Below, piece after piece: positions 5,729 through 12,498 of a stretch of 64,000 nt of DNA (positions within the stretch are counted from its first letter, which is position 1; each line of letters opens with the position of its first letter). The notes below the pieces were generated by a model. That model ran no database searches. It worked only from the letters and a program-made list of their open reading frames with translations, and was not told where the DNA came from. The DNA lies in NCBI GenBank assembly GCA_002104905.1, contig MCFE01000332.1:1-64000 (forward strand), read 5' to 3'. The DNA comes from Basidiobolus meristosporus CBS 931.73. Its lineage: Eukaryota; Fungi; Basidiobolomycota. Made by a program: the position numbers and the translations under genes.

Positions 5729-8311
<2,583 letters not shown>

Positions 8312-8860
8312 CAATATACCACTCTATACCTAATACCCTTCATATTCATGTACAATCTGCTTTATCCGGCCTTGTGTTTGTTCGTCTTGCCATTCTCTTC
8401 TTAAGTGTAAGGCCATACCTGATTACCATGACCCCGTATACGGTCAAGTGTTGGCGATCGCCTTGACTTCTCCATTGGCCCGTCCTGCGGCCAACTTTTT
8501 ATCTACGTTTATTTAATTCCGCTGAATACTTGAATCGATGTTTAGATGTTAAACGCAGTACTTTAATTGGTTTTGCTATAAAGGAAACAACAGCACTTTC
8601 ACTCCGAGGGATCAATTTGATGGTAACGCGCATCGTGCACTTGCCGCCCAATCCCTGGCTCTAACGGGCCTAAAGAACCCCCCCCCGTACCCAACATCTC
8701 ATCACGAGGAGCAAGTGGCATTTATTTGATTTTCTTGATACGTGCATCGAATCCATTGGGAAATGTCGTTCTTTTCCAGCAAATATTATATACAGGCTCT
8801 TGATTTAAAATGTGCAACTTTCAATCGAGTCGAGGTCGTCCGTTATCCACGAACCCCTCC

Positions 8861-9295
8861 CTAGCGGGTTTCCCCGCGAAGTCTCCTCGCCAAGTAGATG
8901 TCCTTGGGCTGGATGGTCACCCGCTTTGCATGAATCGCCGCCAGATTGGTATCTTCAAACAAGGTGACCAGGTAGGCTTCAGTGGCTTCTTGCAACGCGG
9001 CAATTGCTGAGCCCTGAAAGCGTAGGTCGCTCTTGAAATGGCTAGCAATTTCCCGCACCAGCCGTTGGAAAGGGAGCTTGCTGATAAGAAGCTCGGTGGT
9101 TTTCTGGTAACGACGGATTTCCCTCAAGGCCACCGTTCCGGGCTTGTATCGGTGGGGCTTCTTGCCGGTGTAGACGCGTTTCCCGGAGATCGGTGGGTTC
9201 GAGGGCTTTCTCTTGCGCAGATTCGGGGGGATGATGTGCTTCCGGGGGGCTTTGCCGCCCGTGGACTTACGAGCGGTTTGTTTAGTTCTGGCCAT
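8861..9295 (-). CDS. Histone H3 variant (144 aa) with a divergent, extended N-terminal tail; not CenH3-like
   Basis: [18 protein letters not shown] is canonical, followed by a non-canonical 25-aa segment, then an intact H3 fold (KKPHRYKPG...[11 protein letters not shown]...LRFQ...EDTNL...KRVTIQPKD). Intronless. Confidence 0.93.
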
Positions 9296-10036
9296 GACGG
9301 TAAGCAGATGGCTGGTAGATGGAATGGAGAAGAGATGTGGGCAAGTCCCCTCTAGCCCTAGCTGCGAATCTATACCCCCCGCGATGATGCTTTCGTTGAT
9401 ACCATCAGTTCATCCGATCAGTCTATTCACTTGATTTTAAACTTCCCTTTCCTTCCATGCCGGTACATGTTTCGGTCCCCGTTTCGGCTCTGCTGAGGAT
9501 TCGCCACTGGTAGGTCTCGCACGTCGCTGTTGCGTGTTGGCCTGGTTTTGGCATGGCTTCAGGGAGACCGAGCTGGGCGTTGGGGCCCATCTGGATACGC
9601 ATCACCAGCATATTACTCTGGCCAAATGCATGCATGTGCTGCGCATGAGGCGATGATGATGGTGATCGAAAGACCTCAGCCACGATCCATGTGCTAGCTG
9701 TGCGATGGATAGTCCCCAATGGCCACCCAATGTCCTCCTTCGTTCCGACAACTGTGTCCCACGGTTCGAGTAGCTTGAGCATAGAAATAGAGGAACCTTG
9801 GCTGTAAGTGAGGGCCATTTAACCGGTTGGCATGGTGGCAGCCGAATAGACAGGCATGCAGTTAGTCAAGTAGAGATTTATTGACAATACTAGTTGACCA
9901 GAATAGTGATAAGATGGTTAATTCAATCGATGTAGTACATATATAGACGATATTGATCGAAGCTCTTGCCCCAGGTTTCCTAGTGCAGTTGCTTTAAGAG
10001 ATGCCAATGGGTTGAACTAATGCAAGAGGATGTCTC

Positions 10037-10359
10037 TTAGTGGGAGCTTTGCTTGGCTTTGGCTAGAAGGTTCGGAAAGTACCAAGAAGAACGGGGTTAG
10101 CTAGTGTTGGCCACAACTCGACCTCGAAATCACTTACCCAAAGGATTGCGGGGATCGTTGGCATATTCAGGGGCTGTGGTGAGGAAGTTCGTTGTTTACT
10201 GGACTGTTGGTGTGGAATACCCTGCGACTAACACAAACCTTGGATCATAGCGTTCTGGAGCTTGGCGATCAAGCAGAAAGTGATCACGCCTCCGGCGAAG
10301 AAAGGGAACATGGGGCGGAACACGGGGGTGGACCAAGCGCGAAGACCGAAGAAACTCAT
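10037..10359 (-). CDS. ATP18: Mitochondrial ATP synthase subunit j (i/j), 3 exons; absent from the ORF track
   Basis: Spliced product MSFFGLRAWSTPVFRPMFPFFAGGVITFCLIAKLQNAMIQ|APEYANDPRNPL|AKAKQSSH* has the family hallmarks P..RP..PFFA.G and NDPRNP. Introns are in-phase GT-AG. Confidence 0.88.
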
Positions 10360-10760
10360 GATGTACGTTTGGACTGGGTTAACGTTGAGGTGTTAAGAAG
10401 CGAGGGACCGTTGGATACTAAACCAGGCTTAAAGGACGATGGTTCAGCAAATGAGAAGGTGGTCCCGCTACTTTACTCACCCAAATACTGGACTCCCTCG
10501 TCCATACCCCACAGAATCTTCCCCATTTTTTCGATTTGGGGTGGTTTTTTGCTGCACTTGGCGATGTGATGTAACCCGGTCGTGTCACGTGAGCCAAGGC
10601 CACGCCAGGAAGGTTGGTTAACTTTTGGGAATTGGCGTGGGTTCTCGCTAAAGTGCCGGCTTAACTATTGATCATGCTTGATTTGGCAGGAGTAGTAGCA
10701 TTCACAGCTGACTCCTGGAGATTGACTTATGCTTACATATTCCCTTTATTAGATAGATAG

Positions 10761-12498
10761 TTACATACTAGGCAGCTCACCCAATCTTACAAAAGTCAAG
10801 TGGTTAGGCACACAAGCGGAGCCGCGGAGTGATTTTGTGTCTCGGCTCTGGGTGTGTCTTGAAGGAGGGTTCATTTCAGTCCTGGTGCTTTTTGTAGGGG
10901 ATGGTTAAGCAGTGGATCCCAAGGAAAGTGCAAAACCGATCGATCACCAAGAGGGCCCAATGAGTATAGGCGACGCTAGCGAAGACAAAGAAAGCGATGA
11001 GGTAGTAGTACTCGGTGCTAGGTGTGAGCAAGGGTTGCCTGGTTCCAGAGGGTTAGCGATGTCTGCGAAGGTGGCAAGTTCTAATGGGGGGCACTCACGT
11101 ATCGAACCAGTTGGGCGCGTTGACGGCGATTGAGCCAACTACGATTGGTATGAGCAGCACCGTGAACATGGGGAATTCGCTCTTCGTGACGTGGGAGAGG
11201 ATGATTTTGGTGGCCATACGGCCGAACACGATACCAACTGTGATGATAAACAAAATCAGGTGCTCGTGCAACATGACAGAATAGGGAGACGCAAGCCAGA
11301 AATAGATGCAGACCACGTAGAGCGCCATGGAGCTAAGCTGCAGCAGCGTGGTTGCGTAGTTCTTATTCTTTTCTTGACAGGCTTTGCGGACGGCGATGAA
11401 GCTAAAGGAACGTTTCGTCAGAGGCAGGTTGGCTGTGGATTTCAAAGCATGCAGTAGTGTACCAAGCTGGCGAATGGACAAAGGCAATGATCAGGTACAT
11501 GGATAGAAATATCACATCGGCCGGGCTTGTGTCCTTGGGAAGGAACGACGGGGTAAGCTCCCCAAGGATATTCGATAGAGGGGCTCTCCAGATATGAGGG
11601 CCTGTAGGTAGAAAATCAGTAATCGCTTGTATAATGTCGATTGTTCATCCGACGCACTCACCGTAGATCCCCGATAGCACATTGCAAAGGCAAGATAATA
11701 CAAGGCCCTCGGTAGGTCCATTGAATACACCAAGGTAAAGTACACCAGTATGGTATTCCTCCCACGTAGAGAGATAGAAGGGAATGGTGGCTGAATTTGC
11801 CAGTTAATATTTGTGGATTACACAAAGGTTGGATTGGTGTGACCTACTCATTGCAGCCAGGTGTACTGTATACCAGCTGAGTCCCATCCCCATCCCGGCA
11901 GCTTGAACAATACTCCCGATGGAGCAGTTGAGAGCGTCGCAGCCATGGTCGAATAGCTCGCCTAGGTGATAGTCAGAGGATACATACGGCCGTGCTCAAG
12001 AATCAAGAAGCATACCTAGTGGAGACGAGCTTCCAGTACGACGAGCTTGTTTACCATCAACGTTATCGAAGGTCGAATACAACCAGATACCTGCGGCAAA
12101 ACTACGCAGCTTCTAGTTAGTCGCTTATGGTATGGCACATTCATACCAAGGGTTGAGCCGTACCTGTAGTACAACCAAGGGGCGGCAGGGGTTTCGAGGT
12201 CAGGAATGTAATACAAAACGCAGAAAAAGTTGAACACCATGAAACCAAGACCGCATAGTGTTATCAGGTTAGGTCTGTGGATAGCAAGAAGTTAGGAAAC
12301 CACCGCTTCGAAGAGGCCAGCATAAAGTACTAACGCCATCCAAAGTGGAAACAAGCTGACGCAGGCATTCCAGTAGTGGCGAAGGATATAGTGGCTCAGG
12401 TACGACTTGTCCACTGCGGCGTATTTGTACAGTCGTAGTTTACTAAGCGCCTCATCGGAGACGTATTCTGATTTGCTCGACAGACCAAGAAAACCCAT
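10761..12498 (-). CDS. CDP-alcohol phosphatidyltransferase (choline/ethanolamine phosphotransferase, CPT1/EPT1 family), multi-exon
   Basis: [68 protein letters not shown] and [20 protein letters not shown]. The 3' end is less certain. Confidence 0.9.

Follow-up and report, generated by a model that had tools for sequence, protein, structure and literature searches.

Lineage-specific variants of the histone H3 tail are well known in plants, animals and protists. H3.3 and the replicative H3 are only four to five residues apart and keep the entire tail; a patch at residues 86–90 is used by chaperones of animals and plants to tell the H3 types apart. The centromeric histone CenH3 (CENP-A) is distinguished by a tail that cannot be aligned, by a longer loop 1 and by the usual replacement of Q68, F84 and T107. 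To our knowledge, few fungi have non-centromeric H3 variants, most species having one or two near-identical H3s. Altered tails are found in Arabidopsis H3.15 (HTR15) and in the sperm variant H3.10 (HTR10), lineage-specific proteins in which a changed K27 neighbourhood alters the marking of the tail (PMC10426802).

The window analysed here comprises 64 000 nucleotides of Basidiobolus meristosporus CBS 931.73 (contig MCFE01000332.1, positions 1–64 000). An earlier note, made from the letters of the window, had proposed that one of its genes codes for a specialized, non-centromeric H3 variant, and this view agrees with the syntenic orthologue, the low pN/pS and the related second gene described below. 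We consider it probable that the gene codes for a functional, non-centromeric, lineage-specific H3 variant. It would belong to a group of two or more paralogues with a single origin in Basidiobolus, prior to the split between B. meristosporus and B. ranarum. The variant family is assumed to be accessory, beside a canonical H3. Systems of this kind, i.e. lineage-specific H3 tail variants, are already known, and what is new here is the variant clade. A search of the literature yielded no publication that deals with the histones of Basidiobolus or their variants.

The variant gene and its product

The general features of the gene are reported in table 1. A database entry for B. meristosporus CBS 931.73, on the same contig, contains the identical protein. 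It matches the Pfam family Histone (PF00125) with an E value of 3e-42 and 144 bits (cut-off 26.4). When it is compared with the H3 chains of the PDB by phmmer (E 7e-60), its residues 1–142 correspond to H3 residues 1–134 with a single gap of eight residues, located in the tail. The N-terminus and the αN region KPHRY(R/K) are those of canonical H3, and the fold is 85–90% identical to it; about 35 positions differ in all.

Table 1. Features of the H3 variant gene and its surroundings in the window. The values of pN and pS are Nei–Gojobori counts between the variant orthologues of B. meristosporus and B. ranarum. Owing to the saturation of synonymous sites, the pN/pS ratios overestimate omega.
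Feature	Position	Strand	Description	pS	pN	pN/pS
Complete single-exon coding sequence of the H3 variant	8861–9295	−	ATG start, 144 codons and TAG	0.86	0.049	0.057
Codons 1–19, canonical tail	9239–9295	−	K4, K9, S10, K14 and K18 intact; same as canonical fungal H3	0.77	0	0
Codons 20–44, rewritten and expanded mid-tail	9164–9238	−	net gain of 8 residues; 17 of 25 residues shared with B. ranarum	0.94	0.19	0.20
Codons 45–144, K36–K37, αN and histone fold	8864–9163	−	gap-free relative to canonical H3	0.86	0.022	0.026
Probable 3′ UTR block of the variant gene	8712–8792	−	contains AATAAA; 70% over 83 nt versus B. ranarum, blastn E 0.005			
12-nt motif TCTTCTCCATTC upstream of the ATG	9322–9333	−	same letters in B. 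ranarum, E 0.12 (weak)			
Probable 3′ UTR of the ATP synthase subunit J gene	9863–9964	−	104-nt block, 77% identical between the species (E 8e-17), contains AATAAA; 73–174 nt downstream of the stop codon			

Alignment to canonical H3 gives exactly the exchange that the earlier note had described, the 17 residues QLATKAARKSAPxTGGV being replaced by 25. The lysines K4, K9, K14, K18 and K36 are all kept, as it had also stated: residues 1–19 are canonical and K36–K37 are aligned. The changes in the mid-tail include T22P, K23P, A25L, S28R, A29K, G33Y and G34T. The three residues G33-G34-V35 that precede K36 become Y-T-G, and Y-S-G in the orthologue of B. ranarum; position 28, an arginine in B. meristosporus, is a glycine there. 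The basic RKRK patch and the prolines reported for this segment are present in B. meristosporus, but the patch itself is not conserved, since B. ranarum has RKGK.

In the fold, the clade-specific substitutions are S57T, R63S, Q76S, D77H, S86G, G90A, S96T, Q125Y and R134T. The list drawn up previously (R63S, QD replaced by SH at positions 76–77, SAIA at 87–90) is entirely present in the alignment; it had omitted S57T, S86G, G90A, S96T, Q125Y and R134T. The complete patch at 86–90 changes from SSAIG to GSAIA. An AlphaFold2 model of the monomer, based on an alignment of 16 sequences, has a pLDDT of 53.5 and a pTM of 0.25, presents the tail as coil and is too poor to interpret.

As in CenH3, a paralogous H3 fold is combined with a non-canonical tail, and the protein has side-matches in Pfam to the histone folds of CENP-T and CENP-S, both weak and below the cut-off. 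Such side-matches are generic to any histone fold. The differences from CenH3 are more pronounced: the tail can be aligned, its first 19 residues being canonical, loop 1 has the canonical length in a gap-free alignment of the fold, Q68, F84 and T107 are all present, and identity to canonical H3 in the fold is high, as given above. That the protein is the CenH3 of Basidiobolus is thus the least probable of the explanations considered here, and the same conclusion had been reached from the letters of the window.

Two mechanical origins of the unusual segment were considered and rejected. A frameshift does not account for it, the other two reading frames being unlike H3 in both B. meristosporus paralogues. 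A hidden intron, the removal of which would give a canonical tail, is contradicted by the codon-wise conservation of the segment (table 1) and by the annotated gene models, which are single-exon in both species. The open reading frame needs no GT…AG intron, in agreement with the earlier note.

Conserved non-coding sequences flank the gene. The word TTTATT on the forward strand at 8721–8726 corresponds to AATAAA, 135–140 nt past the stop codon of the variant, and the surrounding block appears to be the gene's own polyadenylation region. The motif TCTTCTCCATTC is located 27–38 nt from the ATG in B. meristosporus and 21–32 nt from it in B. ranarum, and is a possible candidate for a 5′ UTR or initiator element. 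The only strong upstream block, at 9863–9964, was considered as a promoter of the variant and rejected, as it is part of the 3′ end of the adjacent gene, that for ATP synthase subunit J, and is probably the 3′ UTR of that gene. Its conservation is unusually high, given that synonymous sites are saturated.

A clade of H3 variants in Basidiobolus

Only one further protein falls in the 90%-identity cluster of the variant: KAK9764741.1 from B. ranarum, which has 144 residues and is 92% identical. The gene order is the same in both species: CDP-alcohol phosphatidyltransferase, ATP synthase subunit J, H3 variant and a convergent PAK-type kinase. The tail letters that differ between the two orthologues include the RKGKSANVPM stretch of B. 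ranarum. The third-position GC content of the variant gene is 0.69 in B. meristosporus versus 0.37 in B. ranarum, and the neighbouring genes are similar; for the syntenic orthologues at 5729–12498 of the window, the values are roughly 0.55–0.69 and 0.36–0.41, respectively. The difference is a genome-wide compositional shift between two species of one genus; the saturation of synonymous sites reflects this shift and is therefore real.

On the basis of these codon comparisons, the gene, including its rewritten segment, is under purifying selection, which is weaker in the segment than in the fold (table 1). Selection on the gene and on its odd segment rules out both a pseudogene and an unrecognized intron. 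A solitary copy with an unusual tail might be expected of a decaying or functionless duplicate in which the frame is open by chance. We regard this as highly improbable: the frame of 144 codons is intact in two species with saturated synonymous sites, the pN/pS ratios are low over the whole gene and in the insert, and an intact paralogue of older origin is present. Neutral dN/dS, which the earlier note had named, together with a lack of expression, as the mark of a pseudogene, is therefore not what is observed.

This paralogue, P0067, is a second H3 variant of B. meristosporus, with 145 residues, encoded on contig MCFE01000152.1 and 83% identical to the window protein. Its expanded tail, QLIPKIARKNTLNAVTASRRTYGV, is homologous to that of the window protein. 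The derived residues common to both number 12, as established by comparison with canonical H3s from the closest relatives for which sequences exist (Conidiobolus, Entomophthora/Massospora and Piptocephalis). The window protein, the B. ranarum orthologue and P0067 all have A21I, T22P, G33Y, S57T, R63S/N and Q76S, a changed D77, and S86G, G90A, S96T, Q125Y and R134T. The stretch from K27 to K36 is longer by seven to eight residues in all three. The H3s of Conidiobolus, Entomophthora and Massospora are canonical, with 136 residues, SSAIG and QLATKAARKSAP.

The H3 phylogeny, proposed previously as a check, is favourable to a common origin. In the maximum-likelihood tree of 30 H3s, the three Basidiobolus variants constitute one clade (support 100/98), the stem of which has about 0.5 changes per site versus a median terminal branch of 0.019. 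P0067 falls outside the pair of orthologues, so that the duplication predates the separation of B. meristosporus and B. ranarum, if the root lies outside the clade.

Systematic searches were conducted for further members. When 5.8 billion proteins are searched with a profile, the clade members alone rank above ordinary H3s among the single-domain matches listed, with 312 and 298 bits versus at most 251 bits. Tail-only, fold-only and profile searches, each with about 8000 scored candidates, yielded the B. ranarum orthologue and P0067 as the only clade members, and an orthologue of P0067 was not found in B. ranarum among the profile-search matches listed. In the JGI metagenomes, a back-translated pattern of 12 variant residues has no match, and the pattern QKTTELLI retrieves 29 protist H3s, none of them with the clade residues. 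As sampled, the clade appears to be restricted to Basidiobolus. Many of the top ‘H3’ matches have 220–250 residues and correspond to tandem double-H3 fusions of gene models in animal, plant and fungal annotations; these outrank the true relatives in searches based on summed scores.

Neither variant gene of B. meristosporus is part of a histone cluster. There is no histone-fold gene within 10 kb on either side of the window gene, which confirms the absence of an adjacent H4 partner noted before, and the surroundings of the P0067 gene are likewise free of histone genes over 10 kb. The P0067 locus (7001–7438) is followed, 3.6 kb downstream, by a gene for an HMG-box protein of 98 residues (11084–11377), and a DUSP-UCH deubiquitinase is encoded upstream.

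The Basidiobolus variants could alternatively be the bulk H3 of a lineage that rewrote the tail of its main H3. NCBI simply names them H3.1 and H3.2, and no canonical H3 of Basidiobolus is found among the 40 members examined of the 233 in the canonical cluster, an absence that concerns those 40 members and is not a genome result. Against this, each of the two genes stands alone, without a paired H4 gene, all of the sampled relatives keep a canonical H3, and the tails of the paralogues are strongly divergent, unlike those of bulk histones. We consider a bulk role very unlikely, if somewhat less so than decay or a centromeric function, and retain the reading of a functional, accessory variant family.

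The K27 neighbourhood and other H3 tails

The earlier note had concluded that the variant would be refractory to H3K27-type marking. In such a reading, the protein would resemble plant H3.10 and H3.15, and its incorporation would erase or block Polycomb-type methylation of H3K27. The residues around K27 are indeed changed (A25L, A29K, and S28R or, in B. ranarum, glycine), and H3.15 (K27H) and the sperm variant H3.10 are precedents for such a reading and its nearest analogues in function (PMC10426802). However, the R26–K27 dipeptide is in register in every alignment and invariant in three of the three clade members, and P0067 even retains A25-R26-K27. The ARKS motif, described as gone, has thus lost A25 and S28 and kept its two central residues.

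The machinery itself may be missing. In the Figure 1 source data of a survey of 180 eukaryotes, EZH1/2, EED and SUZ12 are all given as ‘ND’ for B. meristosporus (PMC10538959); the survey is based on reciprocal BLAST, which divergent homologues could escape. The same survey reports DNMT1, two Dim2-like enzymes, DNMT2, UHRF1 and HELLS in this species. If PRC2 is absent, there may be no Polycomb mark for the variant to escape. The refractory reading is therefore weak, and we consider it unlikely.

The likeness to H3.15 and H3.10 consists in their being lineage-specific, non-centromeric H3 variants with a changed K27 neighbourhood. In H3.15, K27 itself is replaced, whereas it is kept in the Basidiobolus variant. 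Furthermore, the plant variants act against PRC2, undetected in B. meristosporus, and they have no common ancestry with the Basidiobolus clade.

Compared with canonical fungal H3, for example Conidiobolus coronatus KXN73427.1 or H3.1 of Entomophthora/Massospora, the variant shares residues 1–19, K36-K37-P-H-R-Y, αN and a fold that aligns without gaps and is about 88–90% identical. It differs in positions 19–35, which are rewritten and carry eight extra residues, in the twelve clade-specific substitutions and in being encoded by a solitary gene without an H4 partner. With H3.3-type histones it has in common the solitary location outside histone clusters, a putative downstream signal of polyadenylation type and changes in the 86–90 patch. 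However, the patch is GSAIA and not AAIG, and both the length of the tail and about 35 positions are changed. As for the H3.3 signature (S/T31 and A87-I89-G90), residues 86–90 are G-S-A-I-A in Basidiobolus, and position 31 is not assignable across the insertion. Judged by the patch and by the number of changed positions, the variant does not qualify as a strict H3.3.

Length variation in the same part of the tail is not unusual. Insertions of two to ten residues are common in the K27–K36 linker of H3s from Kwoniella, Coemansia, Caenorhabditis brenneri and metagenomic protists. In these proteins, QLATKAARK and TGGVKK are nearly always kept and the fold is canonical, whereas both flanks and the fold are changed in the Basidiobolus clade. 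Some environmental H3 genes in JGI metagenomes and ENA, probably from protists, have a rewritten or shortened K23–K36 segment combined with a near-canonical fold; one example, PRKQLASTGGKKSPPAAAGVIKPHRY, is devoid of the ARKS site of K27. Rewriting of the mid-tail has thus evidently occurred many times, independently.

Predicted nucleosomes and genomic setting

From the residues and by analogy with other H3s, we infer a set of consequences for modification, chaperone recognition and DNA contact. The variant would assemble into otherwise ordinary nucleosomes, since all of the elements that contact H4 and DNA are kept, with the exception of R63, a residue at the start of α1 that contacts DNA. 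Its deposition would probably follow a distinct or replication-independent route, as suggested by the solitary gene, the downstream AATAAA and the change in the 86–90 patch. The isolated gene together with the conserved AATAAA block would point to a replacement-type variant that lacks the K23, S28 and K36 context and keeps K4, K9, K14 and K18.

Chromatin containing the variant would present a normal K4/K9/K14/K18 cassette followed by a different mid-tail. As T22 and K23 are replaced by prolines, acetylation or ubiquitination of K23 would be impossible, as would phosphorylation of S28, which is lost. The bulky residue at position 25 would destroy the second ARKS reader site, K27 being present nonetheless. 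Mutants of G34 hinder K36 methylation of SETD2 type in cis. By analogy with these oncohistones, Y-T-G in front of K36 may hinder Set2-type K36 methylation in cis. The eight additional residues, rich in proline, lysine and arginine, would be placed where the tail exits between the DNA gyres. As a net result, the nucleosomes would be partially insensitive to signalling through the K23/K27/S28/K36 cassette, and the contact between tail and DNA would be altered.

The gene had also been described as lying about 9 kb from a silenced repeat block. A CpG-depleted block does begin at about 18.5 kb, roughly at the stated distance, but no link between the block and the gene is apparent. The ratio of observed to expected CpG is 0.6–0.9 (about 0.75) in the gene-rich part of the window (1–18 kb) and falls across a sharp boundary to 0.02–0.12 from about 18.5 kb, with partial exceptions at 30–36 kb (0.34–0.44) and 62–64 kb (0.38). 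The corresponding ratio for GpC remains near 1.0–1.4 across the depleted part (18000–64000). The loss of CpG fits long-term methylation and deamination of repeats, DNMT1 and UHRF1 having been reported in this genome (PMC10538959).

A wider role of the variant can be suggested only tentatively, as a speculation that we consider improbable. Basidiobolus is an early-diverging fungus with very large nuclei and a large, repeat-rich genome. It may partition this genome, which it methylates at CpG, by means of a dedicated H3 variant. K9, K14 and K18 are retained in the variant; K23, in animals a site of ubiquitination by UHRF1 that is read by DNMT1, and the G34 context needed for Set2-type K36 methylation are both missing. 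Maintenance DNA methylation and K36 marking would then either pass over the nucleosomes that contain the variant or target them specially, and a separate chaperone route that reads GSAIA would deposit them.

The two genes represent an old and selected family of H3 variants combining a rewritten K19–K35 tail with coherent changes in the fold, in a setting of DNA methylation without detectable PRC2. If expressed, this family would constitute a natural experiment on the role of the tail segment around K23, S28 and G34, and on the division of labour between histone variants and DNA methylation where Polycomb is absent.
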